Source of the DNA: Malacoraja senta | Taxonomy: Eukaryota | Direction: 5' to 3' | DNA length: 41,901 bases | Assembly (NCBI GenBank): GCA_038087875.1 | Contig: JAXLNO010001219.1 | Location: 62,001-103,901, forward strand | Part shown: positions 1-41,288 of the stretch, piece after piece | Layout: the number at the start of each line of letters is the position of its first letter | Numbering within the stretch: position 1 is the first letter of the stretch | Notes under the pieces: generated by a model | Databases searched by the model: none | What the model was told of the DNA's origin: nothing | What the model saw: only the letters and a program-made list of their open reading frames with translations | Program-made: the position numbers and the translations under genes

Positions 1-321
1 GCACCGCCTGGGATTGTTGAAAGGCAGCTCCTGCAACACTGCCGCGCTCCCTCAGTACCGCACTGCGATCCCAGCCCAGTTTCTGTTCAGGGATCTGGAG
101 TAGGAAGTGAACCCTAATTGTACTGACCCGGCGACAGAACACTGACACAACAGGTACAATAACAGCACTGGCTGCACTTCAGACCGGAGACATTGGCCGT
201 GAAGCAATATGACACATCGTGGAACGATTTAAGTTTTCTTTCATGTAATCTTCAAAATGTATCTATTTCCATTAAACAGTTCATTTGCTCTCCATCTGAA
301 AGTTTCTCCCCTCCATTTCAG

Positions 322-636
322 CTGCAGTGTGGGGAGAGACGTATGTAAGAGGAGTTGTGGCAAGAGCGATCACAATCGATTGCCACTATGCAGCAGAGTA
401 CCGCTCACACACAAAATACTGGTGCCGTGTGCAGAGTCGCCAATGTACGGATGTGGTGGACACAAATGGGCAACACGGACGGAGTGGAAGAATGTCAATC
501 ACCGATAACCCGGCACGAGGAATATTTACTTTGACTGTGGAGGATCTTCACTCTGGAGATACAGGATGGTACAGGTGTGGAATTACTACATCTAACGGCC
601 GTCCAATGTTAAACGTAGAACTCCAAGTATCTGACG
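322..636 (+). CDS. Gene A Ig V-type exon (V1)
   Basis: Acceptor tttcag|CT, donor G|gtacgt, 315 nt, phase 1-1. Motifs IDCHY..KYWC-x6-C..GRMSITD..DTGWYRC are typical of CD300/pIgR/TREM V domains. Confidence 0.93.
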
Positions 637-3600
637 GTACGTTTCGCAGCGATTGACTTGTCGTCTCCACTGAAGTGCCTGATCAATGTTTTCTCCGGGA
701 AGGGTCAGGGCAGCACCGATATCCCGAGGCTCGGCAGCAGTGCAGAGACCTGTGGGGAGCGGGCGGGGGTCGGGAAACCGCACTCATTTTGCTCTCACCC
801 TGTGCGGGGTCTGCCCCATTGAGCGGCCACCCACTTAGAAACATAGAAACATAGAAAATAGGTGCAGGAGGAGGCCATTCGGCCCTTCGAGCCAGCACCG
901 CCATTCATTGCCATCATGGCTGATCGTCCCCAATCAATAACCTATGCCTGCCTTCTCCCCATATCCCTTGATTACACTACACCCTGGAGCTCTATCTGAC
1001 TCTCTCTTAAATCCATCCAGTGATTTGGCCTCCACTGTCCTCTGTGGTAGTGAATGCCACAAATTCACAACTCTCTGGGTGAAAACGTTTTTTCTCACCT
1101 CTGCCTTAAATGGCCTCCCCTTTATTCTAAGACTGTGGCCCCTGGTTCTGGACTCGCCCAACATTGGGAACACTTTTCCTGCATCTAGCTTGTCTAGTTC
1201 TTTTATAATTGTATGTCTTTCTATAAGATCCCCTCTCATCCTTCTAAACTCCAGTGAATACAAGCCTAGTCTTTTCAATCTCTCCTCATAAGACAGACCC
1301 GCCATCCCAGGGATCAATCTCGTGAACCTATGCTGCACTGCCTCAATCACAAGGATGTCCTTCCACAATTAGGAGACCAAAACTGTACGCAATACTCCAG
1401 ATGTGGTCTTTCCAGAGCCCTATACAACTGCAGAAGAACCTCTCTACTATATTGAAATCCTCTTGTTATGAAGGCCAAAATTCCATTAGCTTTCTTCACT
1501 GCCTGCTGTACCTGCAAGCCAACTTTCAGTGACCAGTGCACAAGGAAACCCAGGTCTCGCTGCGCCACCCCCTTACCTAACCTAACCCCGTTGTGATAAT
1601 AATCTGCCGCCTTGTTTTTGCCACCAAAGTGGATAACCTCACATTTATCTATATTATACTTCCACGCATCTGCCCACTCACTCAACCTGTCCTGGTCACC
1701 CTGCAACCTCCTAACATCCTCTTCACAGTTCACACTGCCATCCAGCTTTGTGTCATCCGCAAACTTGCTAGTGTTGCTCCTAATTCCCTCTTCCAAATCA
1801 TTAATATATATGGTAAACAGTTGCGGCCCCAACACCGAGCCTTGCGGCACTCCACTCGCCACTGCCTGCCATTCTGAAAAGGACCCGTTCACTCCTACTC
1901 TTTACTTCCTGTCTGCCAACCAATTTTCTATCCACGTCAACACCCTACTCCCAATACCAATCGCTCTAATTTAAGTCACCAGTCTCTCGGGCGGGTCCTT
2001 ATCAAAGGCTTTCTGAAAGTCTAGATATACTATATCCACTGGCACAACTTCATCCATTTTACTTGTCACATCTTCAAAAAATCCAGAAGATTAGTCAAGC
2101 ATGATTTTCATAAATCCATGCTGACTTGGACTAATCCTTTTACTGTTATCGAAATGCCCCATTATTACCTCTTTAATAATTGACACCAGCATCTTTCCCA
2201 CCACCAAAGTCAGGCTCACTGGTCTATAATTCCCCGTTTTTTCTATCGCTCCTTTTTTGAAAAGTGGAATTTAACTTCTCATTCACTTCACTTTTCACTT
2301 AAAGTGGAATGCTCAGCACATTTCCCTTCCTCTGAACTGTATGAAATGTCACCCTGTCAGAAGTTTGCATTTCGACTCAAACTAATAATCCGACAGATCA
2401 GTGAGAAACAAGTGTTGCTCGCGGTCTGAATACGCCGAGAGTTTAAAAAAACAGTCCCCAGAGCTCAATAGACTGCGATCAGTCCTCCCGTGGTAGGCCA
2501 TCCCGCTTCCCGCCCCCACCTCAGGGATCAGTCATTCCCTCCCAAACCCCGCGCTCTCTCTCTCTCCCTCTGCCCCATCAATGCGCCCCCATCTCCAGCA
2601 GCCAACGTCCACCCACCGCCCGGCAGTCAGCCAATCTCTCCACCCGGACATTTCTCCGGTGTTAAGCAGAATAAACTCATCTTTCACCCCATCAGCCGTC
2701 GCACACAACACATAATCCTCCAACATTTTCGCCACCTCCAACGGGATCCCACTACTAGACACATCTTTCCATCTCCACCGCTTTCTGCTTTCCGAAGAGA
2801 CCGTTCCTTCCGTAACTCCCTGGTCAACGTCCATCCCCCCCCCCAAAAAAAAACCCCATCCTCTCCCCAAGTACCTTCCCCGACAACTGCAGGAGATAGA
2901 TCACCTGTCTCGATACCTCCTTCCTCTACTCCGTCCAAGGTCTCCAACAATCTTTGCGGGTGAGGATTGACTAGCATCTCCTCGAAGCTCACCTACTACA
3001 TCCGCTGTTCCAGGTGTGAACTACTGTATATCGGCGAGACCAAGCGCAGACTCGTCGATCGTTTCGCTGATTAACTCCGCTCAGTCTGCTTCGGCCGACT
3101 TACAACCCATCGGTTTGAATATTGACTTCTCTAACTTCAAGGAACCCTTGCTTTACTCCTGTCCCCATCCCGCCACCATCCTAGCTCTCCAGTTAGTTGC
3201 ACAGTCAAACTGATTTTATTTTACTTATTGTATGCCTCGTTGTCACCTTCCCTTCAGCTCACAATGATCCATTGTCCATTTTCTTTTCACCTTTGATCAC
3301 TTGTTTTCACACCTTACCTTTCCATTTATCTTCTGTCTCCCTGTCCCATGATTCTCAGGCTGAAGATGGGTCTCGACACGAAACGTCACCCATTCCTTCT
3401 TTCGAGAGATGCTGCCTGCTCCGTTGCGTTACTCCAAAATTTTGTGTCTATCTTAAAGGGATCGTAAATTCGTTTTCCACAGCAGAGATGGTTAAGTGTG
3501 TGTAGACATGTAATGGGGGAAATGGAACTCGGTGCATTGTGGTGCTGGATCTGAAATCACACTTGAATATCTACACAATGTTCGTAGTTTAACCACTGTT

Positions 3601-6600
3601 GACACATGGTCGAATTGCATCCTGGTGATAAATGAAAGGCTTAAAATAGCGAATGAATTTGAAGCAGATACTGCAAGACACCTGGACCGAAGGTTCCAAC
3701 GTCATCAGTAAGTTAATTCTACACTTTTAAAATGTGTTTACCAAGGAGGTGGAAGTCAGGATTGTGGACTCGTTGTGTCAGTTCAAACATTCCCTACATT
3801 TGTCCGGCTCAACTCTGTCGCAAACCCAACAATTCCCCGGTGTCTGAGACTGAACCACTGTCCTCGCTCTATCCACCCACCCCAACTCTTTCTCCATCAT
3901 CTCTCCAATCCGCGGCCCAGTCGTGCTGAATTGTCCAGGGCGAGCCGGGGTCATCGGGAATAAAACCTGTCCCAGATGAGCAGCGGGACATTGGGCTCAC
4001 AATTCAGTTTAGTTTATTGTCACGAGTACCGAGGTACAGTGAATCTGGCGGTGTGTGTTTTCACGCTAGTAGCGCTCTCCAGCAAGGGACCCGCTTTATT
4101 TTAACCGGTCCGTACTCTGTCCTCAGTCAGGGCGTTGTAAAGACAGTGGCTGCGGTGAATTTCTAAACACGGGTCCGGCCCAGTGTCGGTTGAGAGATGA
4201 ATGCTGGCAGCGCCGACACTGAAATAGCAAAGTGGGGTATTTCTGTGGGTTGAGAGGCCGGGCACCGCCTGGGATTGTTGAAAGGCAGCTCCTGCAACAC
4301 TGCCGCGCTCCCTCAGTACCGCACTGCGATCCCAGCCCAGTTTCTGCGCAGGGATCTGGAGTGGGAAGTGAACCCTAATGGTACTGACCCGGGGACAGAA
4401 CACTGACACAACTGGTACAATAACAGCACTGCCTGCACTTCAGACCGGAGACATTGGCCGTGAAGCAAAATGACACATCATGGAACGATTATGTTTTTCA
4501 TGTAATCTTCAAAATGTATATATTTCCATTAAACAGTTCATTTGCTCTCCATCTGAAAGTTTTTCCCCTCCCTTTCAGCTGCAGTGTGGGGAGAGAGGAA
4601 TTTAACAGGAGTTGTGGGAAGAGCCATCACAATCGATTGTCACTATGCAGCAGAGTTCCGCTCACAGGCTAAATACTGGTGCCGTGGGCAGAGTCGCCAA
4701 TGTACAGATATGGTGGAAACAAATGGGCAACACGGACGGAGTGGAAGAGTGTCAATCACCGATATACCGGCACTAAGAATATTTACTATGACTGTGGAAG
4801 ATCTTCACTCTGGAGATACAGGATGGTACAGCTGTGGAATCACAGCACCTGCCGACCATTCAATGTTTAACGTATATCTCCAAGTATCTGACGGTACGTT
4901 TCGCAGCGATTGACTTAATGTCTCCACTGAAAAGCCTGATCCATGTTTTCTCCGGGAAGGGTCAGGGCAGCACCGATATCTCGAGGCTCCGCAGCAGTGC
5001 AGAGGCCTGCGGGGAGCGGGCGAGGGTCGGGAAACCCCACTCATGTTTGCTCTCACCCAGTGCGGGCTCTGTCCCATTGAGCGGCCACCCACTTCAAGAC
5101 ACTCAACACATTACCCTGCCTCTGAATTGTATGAAATATCACCCTGTCAGAGGTTTGCATTCCGACAAACTAATAACCCGACAGATCAGTGAGAAACAAG
5201 TGTTGCTCGCCGTCTGAATACCCGGAGAATCATAAACAGGGAATCAGTCCCCAGAGCTCCACAGACTGCGTTCAGTCCCCAGGTACCTTCCCCTACAACT
5301 GCAGGAGATGCAACACCAGTCACTATATATCCCCCCCTTTACTCCATCCATGGGCCTCAACAGTCTTTTCGGGTGAGGCAGACGTTCACTTGCATCTCCT
5401 CTAACCTCATCTACTCTATCCGCTGTTCCAGGTGTGAACAAGCGGATATAGTAGATGGGAGACCAAGCGCAGACTCGGCGATCGTTTCGCTGAACAACTC
5501 CGCTCAGTCTGCCTCGGCCTACGCTACATCCCGATTGCTAAACACTTTTATTCCCCCTCCCATTCCCAAACTGAACTTTCCGTCCTGGACCTCCTCCAGT
5601 GTCAGAGTGAGGCCAAAGGCAAATTGGAAAATCAGCGCCTCATATTTCGCTTGGGCAGCTTACAACCCAGCGGTTTGAATATTGACATCTCTAACTTCAA
5701 GTAACCCTTGCTTTACTCCTTTCCATCCCGCCCCCATCCGAAACCTCCAATTAGATTCACCTGATAATATTTTACTGATTGTATGCCTCGTTGTCACCTT
5801 CCCTTCAGCTGACAATGATTCATTCTACATTTCCCTTTAACATTGTCACCTTTGATCACTTGTTTTAACATCTTACCCTTCCATTTCTCTTCTGTCACCC
5901 AGAACATGACTGTCAGGCTGGAGAAGGGTCTCGATCCGAAACTTCACCCACTCCTTCTCTCGAGAGATGCTGCCTGCTCCGCTGAGTTCCCCCAGTATTT
6001 TGTGTCTCTCTTAAAGCGATCGTAATTAGTTTTCGCGATTAAATTACAAGGCATTGAATTGTGTTTTTGGCACGCTGGTCTTCATCAGTGAGAACATTCA
6101 GAATATAATTTGAGATAATATGCTTCAGACGTGCAGATGTTCAGTCCACACTTTGGGAATTGTGTTCAGCTTCAGTCACTCAGCTCCAAGAAAAGTTGAG
6201 ATGGACAGCGTGCAGAAAGGTTTAAGGGCGACGTTGCCTGGACAGGATGGGATTGACGCAGGGAGCGATTGGACAAACTCAGACTTCATTCCTTAGTGTG
6301 GAAATGATTGAGAGAGGAACTTATAGAAATGTATCAATCACGAGAAGCATGTTCATTTTCCCACGATGTGTGGAATCAAAAAGTGGAGGACAGAGGTAAT
6401 GGGAACTATTTAAAGAGGTGGAATAGTAAGGTGCAATTGACCATAATGTCATGTTTTGTACAGATGAGTGGCCGAAGCTGAACACAATTCGCACAAGTTC
6501 GACCTCAACAATATATGTACAACTGAAACATAACATCCCAACATATGTTCTGAGGAACAACATTTTCCACACATTGGGTAATATGTACATGGAACCTGCT

Positions 6601-9600
6601 GCCAGGGGAAGTTGTTGAGGCAGTTAGAATAGCAGCATTTAAAATAAATTTTGGATATTTGCGTAGATTGGGATCATTGCGAGTGATAAATGAGAAACGC
6701 GGACATATGGAAATGTCATAGAAAGACATGTTGGTCGGCATTAATGAGCTGTTGTGATGGGCATCTTTCGGTTCTCTATAACTCTAACCTTCTTCGGTTT
6801 CTGCGCTTCGCACACTCCCAGAGATGTAGATGAGCCGGTGAGGTATCAACCGGACGGTTCGGGCTGAGATAAAGTGCTGCTGAGATTTAGCAAGTGTTTG
6901 GTTTTTAACAATTCATACAGGTGACTGAATATTTGCTCCATTCCCACAGAACCCATTTCTGCTCCTGTGCTCAGTTATCTGTCAGCAGCAAATGCCTCAC
7001 GTCTTGGAGGCTCAGTGTCAGTGTCCTGTGAGTCTCTCCGTGGATCCCTTCCCATCCATTACACGTGGTTTGAGAAGAAGGAGCATCGGGTGTCAACGAT
7101 CTTGAAAGGCAATCAACTGGATCTGAGTTGTGACATCCTCAGAGGTGAACACCTTCGATATTACTGCACAGCCGCAAATAATCGTGGGACAAAACCCAGT
7201 GAAATAGTCAAGGTGAAAGTCTTCAAAGGAGCAGGAACGTGCAGTTATGTGACAGAAATGAACAATGCAGGTGAGTGTTCCTCTCGTGTCCCTGAACCTG
7301 CTGCTATTCACCTTGTGGTGATGTTCATGGATTTCTTGTTATTTGCAGACGGCATCATTGCAGCCACCGTGAGCTCATGCTGTAAAATGCGAGAGTTTGT
7401 TTGGGGGACTGGCAAATAATTGCCCGTAGCTTCCACCATGGAGGTGTTGCGCAATTTCAGCAAAGGAGAGAAAGACATGCACTTGTCACAAAGGGTTGAG
7501 TGCACTCCATCAAATTTCTGCCTTCTGCCTTAAAAAATGCCGCTTGGCTGCCGCTTAAGGTCTCACAGTCACTTTGAGACATTGAAAGCAACCAAATGCA
7601 TCCTGTTTGGATCCGCCATCATTTACAATCAAGGATGTGAGACCAAGCGGAGGCTTGGCGATCGTTTCGCCGAACACCTCCGGTCGGTCCGCAATAACCA
7701 ACCTGAACTCCCGGTGGCTCAGCACTTCAACTCCCCCTCCCATTCCGTATCTGACCTCTCTGCCCTGGGTCTCCTCCATGGCCACAGCGAGCAACGCCGT
7801 AAATTGGAGGAAATGCACCTCATATTCCGCTTGGGCAGTCTACATCCTGGTGGCCTGAACGTTGAATTCTCCCAATTCTGCTAGCCCTGGCTGTCCCCTC
7901 CCCTTCATCAGCCATCTGGTTGTCTCCTCCCCTCCCCCAGCCCTCGGGCTCCTCCTCCGCCTTTTCCTTTTTTCCTTTCTTCTCCCCACCCCCTATCAGT
8001 CTGAAGAAGGGTTTCGGCCCGAAACGTTACCTATTTCCTTCGCTCCATAGATGCTGCTGCACCCGCTGAGTTTCTCCAGCATTTTTGTGTACCTATGTAC
8101 AATTTCATGATCATGTTCATGATTTTAACTGTTAATTTGTGTTAAACTCCAGTAATATCACTAAATTAAATTGTAATCTACTTGGCCGTCACTCCATCAA
8201 GTATAACCCTTACTTTTGTCAAAGAGAATTTTGAAATGAACTCCCAGTAGTCGTGGAGACGTTCAGATTGGAAGTCCAGAATAGAGTGTGAATGGTTTAC
8301 ATCAGAGAGACCAAGCTTATACAATGCCAGCGTTTCTTAAACTATTTCAGTGCCATTCACCCTTGAGTCTTTATTACAAGATTTAATTCACCCTCCACTA
8401 AATATTCTTATGTTTTTGGGTTATTATCATCTTATTTTCACGTGTGCATAATTTTATATATAATTTATTTTGTCACATGAGCAAAAAACATGAATTAACT
8501 CATTCACCCCAAAATAATTTCATTCGCCCTTGGGTAAACCATTCATCAGTTTAAGAAGCACTGGCCGAGGCTACAATTTCGCCGAACACTTGTGTTTGGT
8601 CTGTCATGACCCAGAGTCGTACTTGATAGACACCCCGTTGATGCAGAGCAGCAGCAGTTTGCACCATCTGCACGATGCACTGCAGCAACTCACCAAGACT
8701 CCCAAGACATTACCTTCCAATTGCAACAGGCTCCGTGTTCAATGCATCATTAGTCACCATTCACACCCACATTGGCTGGGAAGCGCTTTGGAACGATGTG
8801 CAGATGGTGAGGGACGGTGTACAGTATCTGTCTCTCATCGCAATCTAGGTGGAATTCAACAGAGTTAAGAAAATCATTGGGCGGACTCCCCTGTATATAT
8901 TGATGTATACTATAATGTATATGTTTGTGAAAGACTAATTTTGCTCTTCAATCTATGAAAGAATTTCCTTCAGTTTCAGGTGCACTGTGGGCAGAGAGCG
9001 AAGTACGAGGGGTTGTGGGAAGAGCGATCTCAATCGATTGTCACTATGCAGCAGTGTACCGCTCACACACAAAATGCTGGTGCCCTGGGACAAGTCGCCA
9101 ATGTACACATATAGTGGAAACAAATGGGAAACATGGACAGAGCGGAAGAGTGTCAATCACAGATAACCCGGCACGAGGAATATTTACTGTGACTGTGGAG
9201 GATCTTCACTCTGGAGTTACAGGATGGTACAGATGTGGAATTATTACACCTGGCGAACCAACATTTAAAGTACATCTCCAAGTATCTGAAGGTAGGTTTC
9301 TCAGTGAGTGACTTCATGTCTCGACTTTGGCATCTGCATAAAACATTTGTTGGGTCACATATGGGAGCCTGGTGCACAGTTCTGGTCGCCGCTTTATAAA
9401 ACAAAAGATGTGAAAGGTTTGGAGAGGTTACAGAAAAATGTCACCGGGATATTTAGTTGTAGTTTACAAATGCAACATGGAAACGGATCCTTCGGCCCAC
9501 CGAGTCCACACCGACTAGCGATCACCGGTCACACTAGTTCTATGTTATTCCACTTTCCCATTCGCTCCCTACACACAATTCTACAATACCGCCATTCACA

Positions 9601-12600
9601 CACCTCATTAGTGCAACATTATCACTATCAACAATTGTATACAAGGAAATTTAAAAGTTGTTGATAATGATACTGTTGCACTAATGAAGTGTTTGAATGT
9701 TGGTATTGTAGAATTGTGGCAGAGTTTCAGATTAAAAGAAGATTAACTGCAGATGCTGGAAATATAAAACAAAGACAGATGGTGCTGCTGTGTATTGGTG
9801 CAGTGGCAGACATGGTAGTTCTGCCAGCTGGGTGGATGGAGAGACACAGAGATGTTCAAATCTGTTAAATTGTGAGGAGAAGGTACAGGGAAGACTTACA
9901 AGGATGTTGCGAGGGATTGAGCAGATTAGGACTTTATTTCTTGGAGCACAAGAGGATGAGGGATGATCTTATGGCAGGTAAAAAATAATGCGAGGAATAG
10001 ATCGAGTTAATACACAGCCTTTTGCTCAGAGTAGGGGAATCGAGAACCGGAGGACATGGTTTTAATATGAGGGGGGAATGATTTAACAGGAACCTGGGGA
10101 GTAACGTTTTTACACAATGGTTGGTAGGCACATGAAACGAACTGCCGACAGAAGTAGTTATGGCAGGTACTATCGTAACATTTAATAAAATATTGGACAT
10201 GTACATGAATATGATATGTTTAGTGGGTTAAGGGCCAAGAAAGGGCAGGTGGAACTAGTGTAGATTGGGCGTGTTGGTCAGCGAGGGCAAGTTAGACCGA
10301 AGGGCCGGTTTCTATGCTGTATGACTCTATGATTCTATGTAGATGGATGGGTCAGATTCCAAAATGGCGGCTCTGGCTAAGATACATGGTGGATATTGGC
10401 GAGTGTTTGATTTTCAGATGTTCACTCAGTTGTCTGACTGTTTGCTCCTTTCCCACAGACCCCGTGTCTGTTCCTGTGCTTGGCTTTCTGTCACCAGCCA
10501 ATGTCTCCTGTCTCGGGGGCTCAGTGACAGTGTCCTGTGAGTCGGTCAGTGGATCCCTTCCCATTAGCTACACATGGTATGAAAAGACCCCATCTGTGGA
10601 TTCAAAGATCTCAGACCAAAATGCCCTGGATCTGCATTGTCAATCATTCAAACACCAGCACCATCAATATTATTGCACAGCCTCCAATAATAATGGAACA
10701 AAATCCAGTGAAATGGTCAATGTGTCCATCTCCAGCAGTGACGTGCCCTGCAGTTTTCTAGTGAAAATCAACGGCACTGGTAAGTAGTGGGGGGAATGAG
10801 GAGAAGAAGGGGAAGTGCGGGTGGGGGTTTCATCAGATTACAAGTGATAGAAGCAGAAATAGACCATTCAATCATGGCTGATCTATCTTCCCCATTCTCC
10901 TGCTTTCTCCTCATAACGTCCGTCACCCTGAAATCCCTGCACGTTATTTAATTAATTTATCAAGATTAATATATGGAATTATGGCTCATTTGTCAGTACT
11001 TGGTTGTTGGGCTCCAGAAATAGAATTCCTAGTGCTGGTGTAGGCTAACATCCTGTATAGAATTGTCTCTTCCATTTACACAGCTTTAAACTAGGTTTGC
11101 AGTGACATCAGTCCATGCACATTCACTTTCCCACCACATGATCCACACACAGATATGGTAAGGGATCAGACATTATCAGTAAATGTGGCCACAGTTAAAT
11201 CCTTGACGACGGTATCCCATTTACCAGCACCTCGTCCATTGCAGCAATTCAGGTACCTCCACCTTCTGGGTTTAAAAATATGTCTTGATACCCTTGAAAC
11301 ATCCTGCTCCTTAACTTAACCATGTGTTCTCCACATTTACACATATCTGTCGTGCAACATTTCCCAAAAATCCACTGTCTATGCAGCTCAGAGTTTTTGC
11401 ACACCTGTAATTGGTTTCCCCTTCCTCACCTGGGGGAGGCGGACAGGAGCACTTGGAGAAAACCCACACGGTCACAGGGAGGTGGTAAAAATTCCGTACA
11501 TCCGTAGTCAGGATCGAACCCGGGTCTCTGGCGTTGTAAGGCAGCAACTCTACCGCTGCGCTACTGTGCCGTCGACACCTGGCGCCAGAGTTGTTACCAG
11601 CCCGCCTGCTTGTCGTAACATCTCCCATTTACTCAACTCACACTGAAGAAACATTATCCTGTCTGTTAAGCCTATCAACTACTTACATCGGAAAACCATA
11701 CTCCTTTGTTCAACTGCAAGTGAAAAGCAGTGAAACTGACTTTTATTTCCTTGTTCCAACAGGTCATGAATATTCTTGTGAAAATTCGATAACATCCAAT
11801 TACTCTGCAAGGTAAACCACTTTATTTCCAATGGAAGTTACAATATAGTAATTGCTGGTGTTTTGGTTGGGAATGCTTTATTTGGGAGAAATTTGTGCCT
11901 GCCTTTCACTGGCATTAAATGCCCTGAGAGTATTGATCTGAATGCACAGTGGCACAGCCGATAGAATCACAGCCTCACAACACCACGACCCTGGTTCATT
12001 AGGTGCTGTCTGTGCGTGGTCTGCATGTTTTGCCTTTTATTGTGTTGGTTTCATTTAAGTGCTCCAGTTTCCTCCCAGCTCCCAAAGATGTGCCAGTTGT
12101 AAATTGCCCCGTGTGTACAGGACAGCGGTTGAATCTGTGGATAGGGGATGGGGCGGGGAGGGAGGGAGGGTGTTGGACGGTAGTGCTAGTTGATGAGGAA
12201 GTGGGGAAAATAAAAATGGGATTGACAGAGGATCCGTGTGAATGTAGTTGACTGTCGGCACAGACCAGAAGGGCCAAATGGCCTGTTTCAATACTGTGTT
12301 TCTCCATGGGTCTTTGATCCAATGAAACCAAATATCGAAGCATAATCAAATTTTGTACGTCCAGCCATGATCACATTGAATGGCGGTGCTGGCTCAAAGG
12401 GCCGAATGGCCTACCCCTGCACCTCTTGTCTATTGTCTATTGTCTATTGTTTCAAGCCTGACACCAAATATAAATGTATCTCTTAAATATTCGTTAATAA
12501 TATGTATATAACTTGCAAACCAATTATTAGTTAACTCTTCAGAAGGGGAATTACACTGGGTTTACATCTCATTGTGTTGTGTACATGCTTGGATGATAAG

Positions 12601-14863
12601 AACAAGTTCTTCCATTTGCTGCTTTTCAGAGAGCGCTTCCTGCAGTATTCACCATGACTTCTCCTTCACTAACCTCATCCCATGCTGTGAGATGAATATA
12701 GTTGCCAAACCCAAGTCTTGCAGTTTAGCTTGGTTGACACTTGCTCTGGTGTGGTGCTGATAGGTAAATGCATTATGAATTATGGGATAAGACACCCCCC
12801 CTTGATATCACTTATGGCAACACCTTGCCATTGGTGGGGTCACGCACCAACAATTCGCTGGCGCAGAATGTGAGAAAAGTCTTGAATCAGACCGAATACA
12901 GCGAACTGAGTTAACTCAATCAATCAATCAATCAATCAACCGTTATTGTCATTTTAAACATTTCACACATAAATAAAAACAATAAAAACACTCCAAAATA
13001 ATAATAATCAATAAATAAATATATAAATAAAACAATCCAGTCCCTGATAAAAACAATACGAATAGCTAAAAAGTGCAGGTAAAAAAACAGCAACATTAAA
13101 ATACAAGTAAAAACATTCATAAATAACTGACGCTCCCTTACACATTGAACCTTGAAAACATTGTTTTTTTAAATTATCCCTGAATATTCCATCATAATAC
13201 AGTCATGAAAGTGGGAACACTTTGTTATTTATCTTGTTACAATTGAAATAGGTCTGGCTTTCTATCACACTCTTGCGATAGGAAATAAGAATATTAATAA
13301 AACGCACGCCGCTATTAGCGAACCTTTAACCGATTTTTCGAACACACACCATCCACACACCTACCGCGTTAATCCAAGTAATATCGAGGGGGCGAGATTA
13401 AGCATTAACATTTTTAATTTATTTTATTACTTGGCCTCATCCGTTTCCATATTTATTGTCCCACCTCCCTTCCACCATTAGAATTGATCCCTTTTAATTA
13501 ATCTATCCATATGGATTTTATTATAATCTTCCTTGCAGCTGCATTTTCTTTCTTCCAGGGTATTACACTGTTCTTTGTATCTTTCACACATCCACAGTGT
13601 TCCCTTTCCCGTGACTCCCAGTCTGAAGAAGGGTCTCGACCCGAAACGTCACACATGGGGTCATGCAGCAAAGATTCGGTGGCGCAGAAAGTGAGAAACC
13701 AGCCTTGAATTCAACCGAATACACCGAACTGTCTTAACTGACGCTCCCTTACACATTGAACCTTGAAACCTCTCCCGCTGTGTTTCGCCAGCATTGTGTG
13801 TCACTGAATTCACTGCTCCATCTGCTGACTTATTTCTCTGTCTTCTCCGAATCCATTTAACCGTCTAATCTCTGATACCCAGTATTGTAGATATGCTCCA
13901 GCAAAGAGGTCAGTAATTGGTGATCATAGGTTGTCCCCCCCCCCCCAGTCCAACACCCGTTCTTTCTCCAAGATGATCTCCATTGGCTCTGCTGCTTCGC
14001 CCCGCTCCACTTCACTAAGATTATGAAGCAAATAACAGGTAAATGTTTCAAAGATAAATCGTCACGTTTCCTCCCATTGATTCTGTATCTCTTGCCCTTT
14101 GCCCAGTTACATCTCATGGAATGTGGGGCGCTGGTTGTTCTTTCTCCTGCTTGTGCTCTGGAGTATCTCAACCGCGGTGTTCACAAGAGGCTGTAAGGTA
14201 GGTTTTATTATCATCATGTTCATAAATTATAGGAGCAGAATTGGTCCATTCAGCCCATTATATATAATCCGCCCCCAATCACGACTATTCTAGCCTTCGC
14301 TCCCGATCCATCCTCCTGCCTTCACCCTATAACCCTTGACATCCTTATTTATGAGGAATATGAAAATCTCCGGCTTAAAAATATCAATTGATTTGGATAG
14401 GTACAAAAATACTGGAGTAACTCAGCGGGACAGGCAGTATCTCCGGAGTGGATTGATATGGCCTCCACAGCCTCCTATGGTAATGAAATCCATTGATTCA
14501 CCACCCTCTGCCCAAAACAATCCATTCTCTTCGCCGAATGTATCCAAACGGTTTCCATTAATGCTTTCAAATATCCTGTCCATTGATATAAACAAAAGTC
14601 GTGCACGTTTTCATAACCTGAAGTTAAACCAAATCACTATGTAGATGATATCATGTGGTTTTGTCAGGTTGTACGTGTGCTGGGTGGATTTCTGTGCGCG
14701 GTGTGGATTCGTTGGGGTCCATCTTCCAGACAGCCATGTGTTGGGGGTGGTCGGGTCAAATAAAGCGTGGTTCCCACTGTCAGTGAGTCTGATGACTTCA
14801 CATTGTCTTTTGCAGAGACGCGATGAATCAGAACCTCGCCACTCGACACACGAATTAGAATGA
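322..14863 (+). CDS. Gene A (5'-truncated by window): multi-domain CD300/pIgR-like V + FCRL-like C2 receptor; join(322..636,4579..4893,6950..7270,8980..9291,10459..10779,11763..11811,14107..14197,14816..14863)
   Basis: All exons have AG/GT boundaries with compatible phases (1-1 for Ig exons, then 1-2, 2-0, 0-stop) and an open frame throughout. Confidence 0.82.
838..2250 (-). mobile_element. CR1-type LINE, 5'-truncated
   Basis: RT motifs GVPQGSVLGPQLFTIYINDL and KFADDTKL, C-terminal SYEERLKRLGLYSLE; (AGAAACAT)n tail at about 838-858. Frame is broken. Confidence 0.93.
2470..3452 (+). mobile_element. Penelope-like element remnant
   Basis: Translates to RDPTTRHIFPSPPLSAFRRDRS and GIY-YIG-like CSRCELLYIGETKRRL; degenerate. 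Confidence 0.8.
4579..4893 (+). CDS. Gene A Ig V-type exon (V2)
   Basis: Acceptor cctttcag|CT, donor G|gtacgt, 315 nt; four-Cys V domain; N-glycosylation sequon NLT. Confidence 0.93.
5230..6010 (+). mobile_element. Penelope-like element remnant
   Basis: TFTCISSNLIYSIRCSRC..TKRRLGDRFAE fragments; same 3' tail as other copies. Confidence 0.75.
6050..6790 (+). mobile_element. Highly decayed CR1 LINE 3' fragment
   Basis: Weak similarity by eye to the CR1 ORF2 C-terminus and 3' region of the other copies. Confidence 0.5.
6950..7270 (+). CDS. Gene A Ig C2-type exon (C2a), FCRL/PECAM-like
   Basis: Acceptor ttcccacag|AA, donor G|gtgagt, 321 nt. Translation EPISAPVL..GGSVSVSCESLRGSLPIHYTWF..RYYCTAAN. 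Confidence 0.9.
7625..8095 (+). mobile_element. Penelope-like element, GIY-YIG endonuclease C-terminus plus 3' tail
   Basis: Open frame ETKRRLGDRFAEHLRSVRNNQPELPVAQHFNSPSH..KLEEMHLIFRLGSLHPGGLNVEF. Confidence 0.88.
8980..9291 (+). CDS. Gene A Ig V-type exon (V3)
   Basis: Acceptor tttcag|GT, donor G|gtaggt, 312 nt, open frame; KCWC and GVTGWYRC variants. Confidence 0.9.
9890..10332 (+). mobile_element. CR1 LINE 3' fragment
   Basis: Decayed match to the CR1 ORF2 end; (CTATGATT)n tail at about 10315-10340. Confidence 0.7.
10459..10779 (+). CDS. Gene A Ig C2-type exon (C2b), FCRL/PECAM-like
   Basis: Acceptor tttcccacag|AC, donor G|gtaagt, 321 nt. Translation DPVSVPVL..VTVSCESVSGSLPISYTWY..QYYCTASN; several N-x-S/T sequons. 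Confidence 0.92.
11404..11575 (-). mobile_element. tRNA-derived SINE (partial)
   Basis: Reverse complement GGCACAGTAGCGCAGCGGTAGAG..GGGTTCGATCCTGACT carries A- and B-box-like motifs. Confidence 0.78.
11763..11811 (+). CDS. Gene A Cys-containing linker micro-exon (GHEYSCENSITSNYSA)
   Basis: Acceptor ttttatttccttgttccaacag|, donor AAG|gtaaac, 49 nt. Converts phase 1 to phase 2, exactly what the TM exon needs. Confidence 0.75.
11946..12310 (+). mobile_element. Degenerate tRNA-derived SINE
   Basis: Decayed match to the SINE at 16631-16953. Confidence 0.6.
12917..12937. repeat. (CAAT)n microsatellite
   Basis: Direct reading; copy at about 37251-37272. Confidence 0.85.
14107..14197 (+). CDS. Gene A transmembrane exon (YISWNVGRWLFFLLLVLWSISTAVFTRGCK)
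   Basis: Long pyrimidine tract ending gcccag|T (phase 2), donor AAG|gtaggt. Hydrophobic stretch with an N-terminal Arg. Confidence 0.8.
14816..14863 (+). CDS. Gene A terminal cytoplasmic exon (RRDESEPRHSTHELE*)
   Basis: Acceptor cattgtcttttgcag|, phase 0 matching the TM donor, TGA at 14861-14863. Confidence 0.68.
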   Translation, partial: RRDESEPRHSTHELE

Positions 14864-15263
14864 AGACTCCTAGCTTGCACCAACAGTGAGGGAATTCTGC
14901 ACCGCGATGAAATATTTATGCATCATCCTGCTTTGTCAACTGATACCAATTGGACGAATATATGTATCTTGCAATTCAACGAACGGTTTCATGAAAGTGA
15001 CTTCAAAGCAATGTTCCAAACTTTCCAAACCATATCTGTTTCCAAAACTCATTTACCGCACTGGTCTTAATGTTTGTCACCTCTTCCAAGGTTTCTTTCA
15101 TCACCTTCGAACTATTGTTTTAACCTCTGCGTGGTTTCTGCTGCTCAAAAGTCTTATACCCTGTTAAAATATATTATATGCATTCAACTTCCTGGAAAAA
15201 AATGTTTTCGCTGACAAATGAATAATTATGCATCAGGATGCTTCTTAATAAATTTTTGTTGTC

Positions 15264-15269
15264 AATAAA
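15264..15269 (+). terminator. Candidate polyadenylation signal, gene A
   Basis: AATAAA about 400 nt after the stop codon, followed by T/GT-rich sequence; preserved in copy B. Confidence 0.4.
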
Positions 15270-15469
15270 TGGTTTGTCTAATTTGTTTTGTTTAGACTGT
15301 AAATTTAGTGTTGAAGAACAGACTGAAATCAGATTGCTGGAGATTTCTCCTGTTGCCAAACGTTAAAGGCGTTAAGGAATGGCAATGATTAATCTTTCAG
15401 ACCATGCTATCCCATCAGAACAAAACTCCCGATGCTGGTTTAAACTGAAGATAGACATAAATTGCTGGG

Positions 15470-16440
15470 GTAACTCAGAGTGACAGGCGGCATCTGTGGA
15501 TATATGAGGTAAGTTTAGGCGGACTCAGCGGCGGTATTCAACGAATTGATCGCCGATCCTGCGCTTGTTCTCGCTTCTCGGCGATCGCTTCGCTGAACAG
15601 CTCCGCTCAGTCGGCCTAAACCTACCTGACATCCCGGTCAATAGACAATAGACAATAGACAATAGGTGCAGGAGTAGGCCATTTGGCCCTTCGAGCCAGC
15701 ACCTCCATTCAATGTGATCATGGCTGATCATCCCCAATCAGTACCCCGTTCCAGCCTTCTCCCTATATCCCCTGACTCCGCAATTTTTAAAAGCCCTATC
15801 TATCTCTCTCTTGAAAGCATCCAGAGAACCTGCCTCCACCGCCCTCTGAGGCATAGAATTCCACAGACTCACCACTCTCTGTGAGAAAAAGTGTTTCCTC
15901 GTCTCCGTTCTAAATGGCTTACTCCTTATTCTTAAACTATCGCTCCTGGTTCTGAACTCCCCGAATATCGGGAACACGTTTCGCTAAACAGTTTAACTCC
16001 CCCTCCCATTCCCACACTGACATTTCTATCCTGGGCATCCTCCATTGTCAGAGTGAGTCCCAGCGCAAATAGGTGGAACAGCACCTGATATTTCGCTAGG
16101 GCAGCTTACACCCCAGCGGTGTGAACATTGACTTCTCTAACTTCAAGTAACCCTTGCTTTCCCTCTCAATCCAGCCCCCCAATTACCAGCTCTCCGATCA
16201 GTCTGACAGTCTCCGACTACATTTTACCTCTCATTGCTTTGTTGTTATCTTCTCCCAGCTAACAATGATCTATTCTACATTTTCCTTGAGCTTCACCCCC
16301 TTTGTCCCGTTTTCACACCTTACAATTCCTAATCTAATTATCTCCACCTCCCTTGACTTCAGTCTGAATAAGGGTCTCGATCCGAAACGTCACCCATTCC
16401 TTTCATCCATAGATGCTACCTGTCCCAATGAGATACTCCA
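15470..16440 (+). mobile_element. Penelope-like remnant interrupted by a CR1 fragment
   Basis: LGDRFAE.. at about 15585-15638 resumes at about 15980 (CTAAACAGTTTAACTCCCCC). Confidence 0.72.
15639..15978 (-). mobile_element. CR1 LINE 3' fragment nested in Penelope
   Basis: (CAATAGA)n tail; ORF 15738-15977 FRTETRKHFFSQRVVSLWNS. Confidence 0.85.
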
Positions 16441-16630
16441 GCATGTTGTACAACAATATTTTTTTGATTAAATGATTGAAAGAAACAGCATGGATACTGA
16501 CCATTTGGCCCACTGAGTCCACGTCAACCAGCAATCAACCCTTTCACAGTAATGTTGATAAACATTTTATTGCTGCAACGAGTTATTCATTTTGTCCACC
16601 GTACAAAAGAGTTAATGGACTATAAATAAT

Positions 16631-16953
16631 GGCCAAGGTGGCGCAACGGTAGAGTTGCTGCCTTACAACGCTTGCAGTGCGGGAGACCCAGGTTCGATCC
16701 CGACTACGGGAGCTGTGTGTACGGAGTTTTTACGTTCCACCGTGACCGCGTGATATTTCTCACAGATCTTCGATTTCCTCCCACACTACAAAGACGTACA
16801 GGTATGTAGGTTAATTGGCTTGCTATAAATGTAAATTGTCCACAGTGTGTGTGGGATAGCGTTATTGTGCGGGGATCGCTGGTCAGTGTGGACTCGGTGG
16901 GCCGAAGGGCCTGTTTCCGCGCTGTATCTCCAAACTAAACTAAACTAAACTAA
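16631..16953 (+). mobile_element. Full-length tRNA-derived SINE
   Basis: A-box TGGCGCAACGG, B-box GGTTCGATCCC, (TAAAC)n tail. Confidence 0.88.
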
Positions 16954-19100
16954 ATTAGTGGAAAGTCTATTCTTGTGCCGAACAAAATGGTTGAGTTGCA
17001 GCTTGCAAAGCCCGGGGTGTGAAACTGCAAATACATTGTGTTGCTTTCTTCAGTCTGACTTGTGACTGTAACCCCGCCCATGAAAGAACTGTGAAGGATG
17101 TTGTTTGAATATAAGAAATGGTGACCTGCAAAAACGGAGTAACCACCATAAAGTTCCGAAAGAGTCAAGGATTGCTTTGGGTAAAATGTCCCACTTATAA
17201 AGATAAATATTATCCACACAGTAAGCAGGGAGACGAGGAAATGAGACCAGAGGCTGCTTTGAACTCATAAACCCCCATGTTAGGGATATCCGAGGAGTGC
17301 TGAATAGCCAGAGATACTTGCAGATTCTGTGGTCACATTGATGCTGCCTGGCCCCTTTCAACTCGAGCTTGTTGATGGTCTAATGGGAGGAATGAACTTG
17401 AATTGGATCTTACCCCACTGCTAGACATCCCAAAGTGCCTCATAGATAGTGAGAGGTAAACAGTCTGAGATGCGACAGATAGACACAAAATACTGGAACA
17501 ACTCAGCGGGATAGGCAGCATCACAGCAGGGAAAGAACGGGTGACATTTCGGGTCGATGCCACTATTGTGTTTAGTGATGGGTACTGGCTTGCAATGTAC
17601 TTTAATCTAATATGTTCAAACAGTCATTTATTTCTTTACACTGATTTGTTCTGCAGTGCTGACACTTTGCTCGCGCTGCTGAAAAAAAGGGTGTGTAGAT
17701 TCGTAACTCTGAACAGCATCTTGCGAGCAGCTCGCTGTAAAACTGTTTGCTGAGAAGTGTTTGCAGTAGTCATGGGTCAAAGGCGAATGTAGACAGAATT
17801 CAATTGTTCTGCTGCATCGTCCGTTCCTCTCTGCAGTGTTTTTAGGTGGGCAAGTATGCAGGAAATAGCTCCTAACAAAAGATCCTTTACTGAGGGTCGC
17901 CAACGCTCAGCTAACACCAGTGGCGGACTCATCAGTGTGTTACACCCATAGTACGTGATACACAACATTGCCACAGATGTACACAACCAGAATAAACGAC
18001 ACTGTTCCACTAAAAGTGACACACCAGAACGATAGACGGCAGCAGATATTAGGTTATATTATAATGCAACTAGTTGCCTACAGAATGAATTCGTTGCAAG
18101 CAGATGTACAAAATCAGCCAATGGAATGTACACGAACACAACCCTGATAATGTATTCGCTCTGCATTGTAAAGAAGACAAGTTAATAATTCAATTCGCCG
18201 TGCATATTCTACCTTGCTTTAACTTCACTAAGTGTATCACTTCGCCCTTGTTGAGTTACATTACACATGTCAGTTACATTCCACATCCCGCTTTCCCAGC
18301 TGATCTCCATCCTGTGGTAATTCTAGACAAACTTCTTCACAGTCCTCCAGACCGTTAATTTTCTATTTTCAAAATGTGAATACCATGACAATAGTGTTTC
18401 AAATTTGAATTGAAGAGTTGAAGCAGAGAGGAGAGGGTCAAACTCCAATTAACCTCAGCTGATTTCAGATGAAAATCCCCTACTTCCTAACGCCAGCTTC
18501 CTGTTTTGCCCCTTGTCAACAGTAATAAGCAAAAACAAAAGTTCCAATTATTATATTTTTGATCTGCCGGTCCACTTACAAAATCATCAAGAGGGAATGA
18601 TCGGGAAGTGTACACATCTTAGGCGTTTCTACAATTCTAAATCGTCATATTTTATCCAACGTATCATTGTTTACATGAAGGGGCCCGACCCGAAACGTCA
18701 CCTAACCATTTTCTCCAGAGGTGCTGCCTGGCCCGCAGAGTTCCTTATGAATTTTTTTGTCTATCATTATTTCCACCACTTTTCAGTGTTAACAGACTCT
18801 GAGTACAGAGATAATCGCCGCTGCATCCTAACGGATACATCACACTTGACGAAGTGGTTGAAGCAGCTGCAATAACAACATGTAACGAGCACTTGGACAG
18901 TTCCACGTATGGGGAAGGTTTGGGGAGTTTCGTGTTGAACGTGGGAAAATCTGACTAACTTAGATGAGCACATTGGTCTAACGCGTTGGGGAGAAGGGCC
19001 TGTTTCCGTGACGTATGACTGTGATCATCCGACCCAACCATTTGTTAAATATAACCCTGATCCTTTCACACTGTAACGTGTCGAGCTGCTGCTGGCTCGC

Positions 19101-19227
19101 TGTGGTTCACGATCTGAAGTCCTGTTCCCTTCTTCGTCGTTGCTATTCGAGAGATGAGGTTGTATCTGAGAGCTACGAGCTGAGCGACAGACTGACAAGT
19201 GCTGACCTCGTCACTGTGGATAAAACA
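19101..19227 (+). promoter_or_regulatory. Putative proximal promoter/5'UTR of gene B
   Basis: Unique sequence just upstream of the leader ATG; RUNX-type TGTGGTT at 19101-19107. Transcription start unknown. Confidence 0.3.
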
Positions 19228-19264
19228 ATGTGGATTCCCATTCTTCTCATCTCCTCGCTGCCGG
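19228..19264 (+). CDS. Gene B leader exon (MWIPILLISSLP-G)
   Basis: aaaacaATG (A at -3), hydrophobic peptide, phase-1 donor G|gtgagt. Splices to V0 to give the signal peptide MWIPILLISSLPGAVWA. Confidence 0.87.
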
Positions 19265-22200
19265 GTGAGTGAAAGCCAGATCCTGATATTCCAATGATCA
19301 ATGTTATTTGGCGTCCCATGCACCCTTTTCACAGCAGAGATAGTTAAGTATGTGTAGACATGTAATGGGGGAGGTGCAACTCAGTGCATTGTGGTGATGG
19401 ATCTGAAATCACATTTGAATATCTAGACTATGTTCGTAGTTTAATCACTGTTGGCACTTGGTCTAATAGCATCCTGATGATAGTTTATAGGCATAAAATA
19501 GCAAATGAATTTGGAGCAGATACTCCAAGATACCTGGACCGGACATAGGTTGCAGCATCACCAGGAAGTTAATTCTACACTTTTGAAATGTGTTTACAAC
19601 TTAGGGGGGAGTCGGGATTGTGGACTCATTGTGTCAGTTCAAATATTCCCTGCATTTGTCCAACTCAACTCTGTCGCAAACCCAACAATCCCCCGGAGTC
19701 TGAGACTGAACCACTGTCCTCGCCCTATCCACCTACCCCCAACTCTCTCTCCATCCTCTTTCCAATCCGCAACCAAGTCGCGCTGAAATGCAAGTTCAGT
19801 TTATTGTCACGTGTACCGAGGTACAGTGAAAAGCTTTTTCTTGCGTGCTAACCAGCCAGATACATGATTATAATCGATCCTCTTACAGTGCATAGATACA
19901 TGAAAGGGAAATAAAGTTTAGTGTAAGGTAAAGCCAGCGAAGTCCGATCAAGGGTAGTCCGAGGGTCTCCAAAGAGGTAGATAGTTCAGCACTGCTCTCT
20001 GGTTGTGGTAGGATGATTCCGATGTCTGAGTACAACTGCGAAGGAACTGTCCCCGAATCTGGCGGTGTGCGTTTTCACGCTAATAACGCTCTCCGATAAT
20101 GTACCCGCTTTATTGTAGTTCGTCCGTCCTCTGTGTCCTCAGTCAGGGCTTTGTAAAGGCAGTGAATGTCTAAACACGGGTCCGCCTTTCCGCGGCCGGG
20201 TGGGACTACAGGGGTACCAGGCGCTGTTCGCGGGCACCTGGGGGATTTCCGGGACATCTGGGCACCGCCTGGGGTTGAATACATCCTTGACAAGTATTGT
20301 AACATAGTTGTATAGTTGTTTATTTCGTTTATTTGTTTCTCTTGTATTATGGTGGTGGGTTCTGTTTTGTTTTATTGTATCGTAAGTATTATTTTCAATA
20401 ATTAAATTAATTATTTGATAATATTTTTAAAAAAACACGGGTCCGGCCCAGTGTCGGTTGAGAGATGAATGTTGGCAGCGCAGCCGGCGGCACCGCCAAT
20501 TAAATAGCAAAGTGGGTGCTATTTAATTAAATAGCCTGTGATTGTTGGAAGGCAGCTCCTGCAACACTGCCGCGCTCCCTCAGAACCGCACTGCGATCCC
20601 AGCCCAGTTTCTGCTCAGGGATCTGGAGTGGGAAGTGAACCCAAATTGTACTGACCCGCGGACAGAACATTGACACAACTGGTACAATAACAGCACTGTC
20701 TGCACTTCAGACCGGAGACATTGGTCGTGAAGCAATATGACACATTATGGAACGTTTTACGTTTTCTTTCATGTAATCTTCAAAATGTATCAATTCTGGG
20801 TAAATATTTTTAGTATAATATCTAAAGTGACCAGCACACAAGTGGACCCGGATCCAAAATTTATAATACTCGGAACATCAGAATTAAATCAAACATTTAC
20901 AACAACACAAAGAAACTTTATTGATTATAGTATAATAACAGGAAAAAATTTAATTCTAAAATTTTGGAAAGGCCCTACGGCCCCCACAATCAAAATGTGG
21001 ATTATAGAAATGACGGTGACCTTAAACGTGGAAAGAATCAGATTTTCCCTGTTGGACAAACAGGAATTATTCGTTGGAACATGGTCTCCCTTTATTGATT
21101 ATTTAAAGGGTCAGAATGGTTCAGCACGGGAACCTGACTAATGCTCGGGCTAAAGAATGGATGAAATGTTATACTCTGAAATGTACGAATATATCTCGAA
21201 TTAAGTTTTTTATTTTAATAATTTTTTCCATTCTTCTTTAACTATCTTTCTCTTTTTTTTTTGTTTTTTGTTTTGTTTTTTGTTTTTTTTGTTTGTTTTT
21301 TTCTCTTTTTCTTCTCTCTCTTTTCTTTCTTTACTTCATCTATCTTTTTAGTTCTATCTAGTTAAAAAAAAAAAAAAAAAAGACAAAAGGTATTGGAGAC
21401 AATGTAATAATAATGGATAATATTATCAATTCAAAAATGTAAGCCTGTAATGATGTTAATAGGTTATGTACTTATCTCCAATAAAAAATATTTTCCAAAA
21501 AAAACAAAATGTATCAATTACCATTAAACAGTTAATTTGCTCTCCATCTGAAAGTTTCTCCGCTCAGTTTCAGGTGCAGTGTGGGCAAAGTGGGAAGTAA
21601 AAGGAGTTGTGGGAAGAGAGATCACAATCGATTGTCACTATGCAGCAGAGTACCGCTCACACACAAAATACTGGTGCCGTGGGAGGAGTCGATCGTGTAG
21701 AGTTTTAGTGGAAACAAATGGGCAACACGGACGGAGTGGAAGAGTGTCAATCACAGATAACCCGGCTCGAGGAATATTTACTGTGACTGTGGAGGATCTT
21801 CACTCTGAAGATACAGGATGGTACAGCTGTGGAATTTCAACATCAGCCGACCATCCAATATTTAACGTTTTACTCGAAGTATCTGACGGTATGTTTCGCA
21901 GCGAATGACTTGACGTCTCCAGCAGAAAGACAATACAGGATTACAATCGATCCTCTTACAGTGCATAGATACATGAAAAGGAAATTACGTTTAGTGTAAG
22001 GCGAATCCAGCAAAGTCCGATCAAGGGTAGTCCGAGGGTCATCAAAGAGATAGATAGTTCCGCACTACTCTCTGGATGTGGTAGGATGATTCAGATGCCT
22101 GACAACAGCTGTGAAGAAATTGTCCCCGAATCTGGCGGTGTGCGTGTTCACGCTAGTAACGCTCTCCGGTAAGGGACCTGGAGGTGGGTGGTGAGTGGGC

Positions 22201-39198: not shown

Positions 39199-39973
39199 AG
39201 ACTCCTAGCTTGCACCAACAGTGAGGGAATTCTGCACCGCGATGAAATATTTATGCATCATCCTGCTTTGTCAACTGATACCAATTGGACGAATATATGT
39301 ATCTTGCAATTCAACGAACGGTTTCATGAAAGTGACTTCAAAGCAATGTTCCAAACTTTCCAAACCATATCTGTTTCCAAAACTCATTTACCGCACTGGT
39401 CTTAATGTTTGTCACCTCTTCCAAGGTTTCTTTCATCACCTTCGAACTATTGTTTTAACCTCTGCGTGGTTTCTGCTGCTCAAAAGTCTTATACCCTGTT
39501 AAAATATATTATATGCATTCAACGTCCTGGAAAAAAATGTTTTCGCTGACAAATGAATAATTATGCATCAGGATGCTTCTTAATAAATTTTTGTTGTCAA
39601 TAAATGGTTTGTCTAATTTGTTTTGTTTAGACTGTAAATTTAGTGTTGAAGAACAGACTGAAATCAGATTGCTGGAGATTTCTCCTGTTGCCAAACGTTA
39701 AAGGCGTTAAGGAATGGCAATGATTAATCTTTCAGACCATGCTATCCCATCAGAACAAAACTCCAGATGCTGGTTTAAACTGAAGATAGACATAAATTGC
39801 TGGGGTAACTCAGAGTGACAGGCGGCATCTGTGGATATATGAGGTAAGTTTAGGCGGACTCAGCGGCGGTATTCAACGAATTGATCGCCGATCCTGCGCT
39901 TGTTCTCGCTTCTCGGCGATCGCTTCGCTGAACAGCTCCGCTCAGTCGGCCTAAACCTACCTGACATCCCGGT

Positions 39974-40313
39974 CAATAGACAATAGACAATAGACAATAG
40001 GTGCAGGAGTAGGCCATTTGGCCCTTCGAGCCAGCACCTCCATTCAATGTGATCATGGCTGATCATCCCCAATCAGTACCCCGTTCCAGCCTTCTCCCTA
40101 TATCCCCTGACTCCGCAATTTTTAAAAGCCCTATCTATCTCTCTCTTGAAAGCATCCAGAGAACCTGCCTCCACCGCCCTCTGAGGCATAGAATTCCACA
40201 GACTCACCACTCTCTGTGAGAAAAAGTGTTTCCTCGTCTCCGTTCTAAATGGCTTACTCCTTATTCTTAAACTATCGCTCCTGGTTCTGAACTCCCCGAA
40301 TATCGGGAACACG
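39974..40313 (-). mobile_element. CR1 3' fragment nested in Penelope (copy of 15639-15978)
   Basis: Identical ORF 40073-40312. Confidence 0.85.
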
Positions 40314-40965: not shown

Positions 40966-41288
40966 GGCCAAGGTGGCGCAACGGTAGAGTTGCTGCCTTA
41001 CAACGCTTGCAGTGCGGGAGACCCAGGTTCGATCCCGACTACGGGAGCTGTGTGTACGGAGTTTTTACGTTCCACCGTGACCGCGTGATATTTCTCACAG
41101 ATCTTCGATTTCCTCCCACACTACAAAGACGTACAGGTATGTAGGTTAATTGGCTTGCTATAAATGTAAATTGTCCACAGTGTGTGTGGGATAGCGTTAT
41201 TGTGCGGGGATCGCTGGTCAGTGTGGACTCGGTGGGCCGAAGGGCCTGTTTCCGCGCTGTATCTCCAAACTAAACTAAACTAAACTAA
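40966..41288 (+). mobile_element. Full-length tRNA-derived SINE (copy of 16631-16953)
   Basis: Same A/B boxes and (TAAAC)n tail. Confidence 0.88.

Follow-up and report, generated by a model that had tools for sequence, protein, structure and literature searches.

Two neighbouring immune-type receptor genes of the skate Malacoraja senta change abruptly from clearly diverged to nearly identical within the intron upstream of one of their V-domain exons. The genes lie in a 41,901-nucleotide stretch of GenBank assembly GCA_038087875.1 (contig JAXLNO010001219.1, positions 62,001 to 103,901 of the forward strand; hereafter the window), and by sequence likeness each is one gene of the skate modular domain immune-type receptor (MDIR) family, called 'pIgR-like' in databases. 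Divergence between the two falls about 28-fold across the step, from 5.0% to 0.18%, a contrast in age of the same size, and the downstream gene, here called gene B, carries an intact reading frame through it. We tentatively favor, at somewhat less than even confidence, the reading that gene B is a hybrid produced by a recent unequal crossover, or non-allelic homologous recombination (NAHR), between two tandem MDIR copies. An earlier note on this DNA had reported a sharp identity step and had named unequal crossover, long gene conversion and an assembly artefact as possible causes. The step is borne out by the changepoint comparison described below, and both exchange and artefact stay in play once selective constraint is excluded.

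Three tiers of identity between the tandem copies

The first half of the window was searched against the second using BLAST and the two were aligned as a pair with MAFFT, which yielded two direct tandem copies on the forward strand. Copy A (1-17566) is truncated by the window start; it takes in the exons of gene A from V1 to the cytoplasmic tail and a further 2.7 kb of 3' flank. The part of copy B that aligns with it (23755-41901) is cut by the window end, and gene B itself begins at 19228, ahead of the aligned part. The sequence between the aligned copies (17567-23754, forward strand) has no partner in the window and includes the leader and V0 exons of gene B. The offset from copy A to copy B is 23754 at the far left and 24333 to the right of position 3098. 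No N gaps are present in the window, hence none separates the copies.

The whole alignment holds 205 difference events. Counted per 500 bp, there are 19-30 events up to position 3500, 7 and 10 in the next two intervals, and 0-3 from there through the window end. A Poisson changepoint analysis of these events, on which the tiers and step positions are based, places the main step after position 4250 at maximum likelihood (ML; support 4250-4299) with a likelihood ratio of 379, and detects an additional step at 3097-3121 with twice the log-likelihood difference (2dlnL) at 17.3. Identity is therefore not uniform, and the two parts proposed earlier become three tiers. Tier 1 (1-3121, forward strand) differs by 5.0% from 23755-27455, with 142 substitutions and 14 indels, and includes the V1 exon and the remains of a CR1-like long interspersed nuclear element (LINE). 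Tier 2 (3122-4250, forward strand) differs by 2.2% from 27456-28583. The near-identical tract (4251-17566, forward strand) differs by 0.18% from 28584-41901, with 20 substitutions and 4 one-base homopolymer indels, and spans V2, C2a, V3, C2b, stalk, transmembrane (TM) and tail exons, the introns between them and the 3' flank. The window contains the left boundary of this tract but not the right one. The step had been placed at 4380/28713, close to the ML position; 4380 is the first difference to its right. The count of about 20 differences over roughly 13 kb made by eye agrees with the 23 events found to the right of 4380.

The left edge of tier 2 coincides with a 44-bp indel (27384-27427) and with the edge of a repeated element (3099-3477; boundary 3098/3099). 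This tier is probably the remnant of an older exchange, and its 2.2% divergence suggests earlier exchanges within the same array. The indels previously noticed on the diverged side are present, with 14 events left of 3121 that include a 533-bp insert private to copy B (25845-26377, reverse strand). This insert, the private nested CR1 of the earlier note, comes from the 3' end of a CR1-like LINE and sits inside an older CR1 copy. Three relatives at 93-95% identity occur in a locus of Amblyraja radiata (L001). A further division of the near-identical tract (0.31% before about 8418 and 0.12% after) was considered and rejected, as its 2dlnL of about 5, calculated by hand, is not significant given a free changepoint. 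The transition/transversion ratio is 0.80 in tier 1 (1-3121), 0.75 across the diverged part as a whole (1-4250) and 0.43 in the tract of near-identity, with no significant difference between the latter two (Fisher p = 0.34).

Exons were placed using MDIR5 and other relatives as guides, and their domains were assigned by six-frame reading, Pfam and solved-structure searches. The spliced model of gene B, extending from 19228 to 39198, has ten exons with canonical splice sites and an intact frame of 707 residues, in the layout leader-V0-V1-V2-C2a-V3-C2b-stalk-TM-tail. Both copies have canonical splice sites and the same exon order. The leader (19228-19264) and V0 (21574-21888) exons of gene B, both on the forward strand, have no partner in the window; those of gene A lie outside it, upstream, which leaves V1 as the sole exon that can be compared on the diverged side. 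The V1 exon of copy A (322-636, forward strand; 24076-24390 in copy B), a Pfam V-set domain, differs at 16 of 315 nucleotides, the same number of substitutions as counted before. Eleven of these are non-synonymous, changing 11 amino acids, and five are synonymous, giving a ratio of non-synonymous to synonymous divergence (dN/dS) of 0.64 without a signal of diversifying selection. The suggestion that distal ligand-binding domains were swapped can thus be followed in V1 alone, and there it comes without a sign of diversifying selection.

In contrast to V1, the exons to the right of the step that had been described as translating identically are the same at every nucleotide. These forward-strand exons are V2 (4579-4893 in copy A; 28912-29226 in copy B), C2a (6950-7270; 31283-31603), which is FCRL5-like, V3 (8980-9291; 33314-33625), C2b (10459-10779; 34793-35113) and TM (14107-14197; 38442-38532), with an arginine near the start of the membrane span; the stalk exon (11763-11811; 36097-36145) also shows no difference. 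The last exon (14816-14863; 39151-39198, forward strand) encodes a short tail without tyrosine and the stop codon, and holds the sole coding difference within the near-identical tract, a C at 14844 against a G at 39179 that exchanges serine for tryptophan in the 15-residue cytoplasmic tail. Near-identity is equally high in exons, introns, transposon copies and the 2.7 kb of 3' flank, which rules out selection or variation in mutation rate as the cause of the step. Because the near-identity affects all of these sequence classes alike, the step calls for either a recent sequence exchange or an assembly artefact.

Likely exchange endpoint and the V-exon module

The endpoint of the exchange lies most likely within 4251-4380 (28584-28713 in copy B, forward strand), with the last dense difference at 4250. 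The main step starts exactly at the left edge of a conserved 240-bp intronic core (4251-4490, forward strand), located 89-328 bp ahead of V2 in copy A. This coincidence is partly expected, because a conserved stretch holds few old differences. For the core as a whole to hold no more than one old difference has a Poisson probability of 0.005-0.03, and it is this low value that makes an endpoint in 4251-4380 the most likely. The difference at 4380/28713 is separated from the next one by 951 bp. Copy A has a private G at 4380 in its V2 module, while the V2 module of copy B and both V1 modules share a T; the G therefore probably arose by mutation after the exchange.

The earlier note had placed the step inside a repeated intronic module, and the endpoint does fall in the module upstream of V2. 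The further proposal that the exchange made use of the repetition of this module finds no support. An out-of-register exchange between V1 and V2 modules is rejected, since exon order is the same in both copies and V1 of copies A and B differs from V2 at 19 and 17 sites, symmetrically and without clustering. The exchange would accordingly have been in register, V2 module with V2 module, and with exon order kept in both copies no internal repetition of the module is needed. Nor did the core alone offer recombination a long stretch of identity: copies A and B match without a difference for 129 bp at the endpoint, and for 147-159 bp in the longest runs elsewhere in tier 2. As the endpoint run is no longer than these, we do not claim that the module was required.

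The module was said to precede each V exon; its core is present ahead of V0, V1 and V2, and V3 has none. Comparison within the window places the other forward-strand copies at 1-229 (V1 of copy A), 20534-20754 (V0), about 23744-23983 (V1 of copy B) and 28584-28823 (V2 of copy B). Core copies within the window are 94.6-99.6% alike (94.6-96.5% between different modules), and the sequence just upstream of the core is merely about 82% identical between modules. Sequence comparison finds further copies in related skates, at 14523-14759, 27277-27516 and 46750-46987 of the A. radiata locus and at 11052-11288 and 27621-27856 of a Leucoraja erinacea locus (L002). The core of M. senta is 95.8-97.9% identical to these, compared with 85-88% for the V exon and 90-94% for the flanks. 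Conservation of the core (95-98%) thus exceeds that of the V exons (84-88%), both between paralogous modules and between skate genera.

In the sawfish Pristis pectinata (L003), homology begins at about 4226, at the core edge, and continues through the exon (81%) and the first 300 bp of intron after it (88%); upstream of the core no alignment can be made (52%). The downstream intron (4894-5200, against about 3340-3655 of the sawfish locus) is 88% identical and exceeds the exon in this comparison. The V-exon module comprises the 240-bp upstream core, a V exon of phase 1-1 and roughly 300 bp of the intron that follows, and as a unit it can still be aligned in the sawfish. As a side observation, the public gene model at 3001-3336 of the sawfish locus opens at an ATG in the intron that immediately precedes the V exon and lacks a signal peptide; its first exon is probably mis-annotated.

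Several candidate identities for the core were rejected: a structured RNA or a known RNA family, given no Rfam match and a folding z of 0.05, and a coding exon, as its open reading frames (ORFs) on the reverse strand have no Pfam match. We noticed by eye, with no motif scan made, that the core contains GGAAGTGAA (ETS/IRF-like) and ATTGG (CCAAT-like) motifs. Conserved intron flanks are typical of regulated cassette exons. Isoforms annotated in related skates differ from one another by entire Ig-domain exons, and for this reason the conserved flanks of the V exons may control cassette-exon splicing.

A bolder reading treats the V-exon module as a maintained exchange cassette, in which the conserved intronic arms would be preferred homology sites for swapping or re-dealing entire ligand-binding domains between MDIR genes in the germline; we regard this as very unlikely. 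Equally hard to credit is its corollary, that the step at the core edge would be a caught instance of selected domain shuffling instead of a random crossover. The tract itself does not divide the receptor as the earlier note had pictured it, with a homogenised signalling chassis set against swapped distal domains. The signalling end is near-identical, but so are both C2 domains and two V domains out of four. The idea of a signalling chassis goes beyond the present evidence, as does any special role of the module.

The introns also carry several repeated ORF fragments of the type '...ETKRRLGDRFAEHLRSV...LIFRLGSLQPSGLNI(D/E)FSNF', for example at 5438-5701 and 7534-7881, with copies at 29770-30033 and 31867-32214. 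These fragments gave no Pfam match at E <= 0.01; they are the remains of an abundant transposon.

Crossover, conversion or assembly error

In the unequal crossover that we tentatively prefer, two older tandem MDIR copies, about 5% diverged, would have misaligned and crossed over in register in the intron upstream of V2, at about 4251-4380. In the resulting gene B, one parent copy would have supplied the front (V1 with its flanks and, presumably, the leader and V0) and the other the remainder, from V2 past the stop codon, which would give the gene the near-identical body shared with gene A. Such a crossover would yield a fresh duplicate one full period (24.3 kb) long, of which the window would show the first 13.3 kb. 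Several findings are in line with this. There is a single sharp switch from old to near-zero divergence between direct tandem paralogues, in register; near-identity continues without a significant change of rate to the window end, as a fresh duplicate predicts; and the left parts read as truly old paralogues, given their 5% divergence, 14 indels, private LINE insertion and symmetric divergence (19 and 17 sites) from the V2 module.

The tandem array of human KIR genes provides a known case, in which unequal crossover or NAHR has produced hybrid genes and changed copy number (Traherne et al. 2010, PMC2816608). The two systems share a tandem array of Ig-domain receptors and an in-register exchange in an intron or repeat that leaves an intact hybrid, with its outer domains from one gene and its body and signalling end from a second. 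They differ in that the receptors here are skate MDIR with pIgR/CD300-type V and FCRL-type C2 domains, in that the event is seen here in a single assembly, and in that KIR breakpoints have been linked to Alu elements (PMC2816608), whereas the endpoint here falls in a conserved intronic element.

Several observations weigh against the crossover. The prediction that defines it is near-identity across a full 24.3-kb period and, after that, a third copy whose left part resembles that of copy B; the window stops 13.3 kb into the tract, short of its right end and of any third copy. Human conversion tracts reach this length, with a mean of 6.26 kb and the top 10% above 14.4 kb (PMC10172114). Copy B appears to stop at the end of the contig, and the 0.18% divergence with its homopolymer-length differences also fits two alleles or consensus errors. 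In addition, no comparable young tract was found in the fetched A. radiata array, where tandem copies are 2-8% diverged, so that near-identity is not general in the cluster.

One long interlocus gene conversion is a possible but doubtful alternative. A tract of at least 13.3 kb would have overwritten the other paralogue, with its left end at 4251-4380 and the copy number staying at two. Conversion accounts for the step and the uniform near-identity no less well than a crossover does, and the 2.2% tier together with the homogenised module core suggests recurring exchange of the conversion type. Tracts of such size have been reported in human segmental duplications (Vollger et al. 2023, PMC10172114), where blocks of kilobases to tens of kilobases are likewise far more identical than their surroundings; in our case a single boundary is visible, so a conversion tract and a fresh duplicate look alike. 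A tract of 13 kb or more nevertheless sits in the upper tail of the reported lengths, no right-hand boundary appears within 13.3 kb, and the contig break inside copy B is a somewhat better fit to a repeat that exceeds read length. On this balance we infer a crossover over a conversion, and a correct assembly at the locus.

The second alternative is an assembly error. All of copy B, or just its near-identical part, would then be a second haplotype, or sequence of copy A left incompletely collapsed, that the assembly either set in tandem or attached by way of the shared module where the contig ends. In favor of this, the contig probably ends at 41901, within copy B. The 0.18% divergence lies within the allelic range, with heterozygosity of 0.22-0.95% reported for three other vertebrates (Ko et al. 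2022, PMC9516828), and homopolymer-length changes make up 4 of the 24 differences. The transition/transversion ratio of 0.43 is low for real mutations, though not significantly different from that of the left part. The false heterotype duplications described by Ko et al. (PMC9516828) likewise consist of adjacent near-identical copies in polymorphic multigene regions with divergence in the allelic range. They differ from our case in two respects: gaps, one of their four hallmarks (PMC9516828), are missing between copies A and B, and one third of the aligned unit here is 2-5% diverged and contains a private transposon insertion.

Other features of the locus also speak for a correct assembly. With its private 533-bp LINE insert, the left part of copy B clearly belongs either to another paralogue or to a strongly diverged haplotype. 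No shift in register occurs at the junction, and the 707-residue frame is intact. A contig that runs without gaps through transposon-rich repeats implies long reads, and single reads should then cross the junction between the left part of copy B and the near-identical tract. Even if two haplotypes were involved, a real exchange between paralogues would be needed to produce the step from 5% to 0.18%. We consider an artefact rather unlikely, though only slightly less probable than a conversion.

Finally, a recent duplication of the whole unit could have been followed by replacement of the front of one copy from a third, diverged paralogue in the cluster. This would leave the same two-copy pattern as a crossover, and the cluster holds many paralogues. 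It takes two events where one suffices, however, no donor is visible in the window, and the symmetric divergence of V1 in the two copies from V2 (19 versus 17 sites) gives no hint of a foreign donor. We give this course of events hardly any weight.

MDIR family identity and biological meaning

The assignment of both genes to MDIR is based on domain content and on their closest relatives. All four V exons match Pfam V-set (E = 1e-10 to 1e-14), and the best solved-structure matches are pIgR (2.4e-50) and CD300/CMRF35; the C2 exons are of the FCRL5 type in solved-structure and Pfam searches. A protein search with the V2 exon retrieved 'polymeric immunoglobulin receptor-like' proteins of Rhinoraja, Leucoraja and Amblyraja together with MDIR3 and MDIR5 of the clearnose skate (Rostroraja eglanteria). 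The MDIR family is cited in PMC3031540, and MDIR3 and MDIR5 are recorded in UniProt. Protein identity to MDIR5 is 67-87% across V0, V1, V2, C2a, V3, C2b and TM, 41% in the stalk and 69% in the tail, with 12 of 12 leader residues identical.

The spliced 707-residue model has a leader, a membrane span starting ...NVGRWLFF... and a 15-residue tail without tyrosine. We accordingly predict a type I membrane protein, whose putative activating-type end is suggested by the charged residue in the span and the short tail. The clearnose skate MDIR share the pIgR/CD300-like V and C2 domains, the short tail and the charged residue in the membrane span; the receptor described here differs in having six domains (V-V-V-C2-V-C2) and 707 residues, as compared with 501 residues in MDIR5 and 701 in MDIR3. 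The nearest annotated proteins (from Rhinoraja, Leucoraja, Amblyraja and Rostroraja) are at most 92% identical per exon. An independent assembly of the array was not found, the fetched A. radiata and L. erinacea loci being just 87-92% identical at the DNA level, and the literature searched contained no published genomic description of MDIR arrays.

Cartilaginous fish are the oldest lineage of jawed vertebrates, and KIR/LILR-type arrays are known for their birth-and-exchange dynamics. The event is a further example of a known process, the formation of KIR-type hybrids, in the known MDIR family. Gene counts and claims of 'recent expansion' for MDIR in this assembly hinge on whether the near-identical copies are real. 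Should the step prove real, it would catch a hybrid receptor gene of very recent origin in a cartilaginous fish; over the part open to comparison, the proteins of the two neighboring genes are the same except for 11 residues in one outer V domain and a single residue in the tail. The birth-and-exchange dynamics of mammalian KIR/LILR-type arrays would then also run in the MDIR family.

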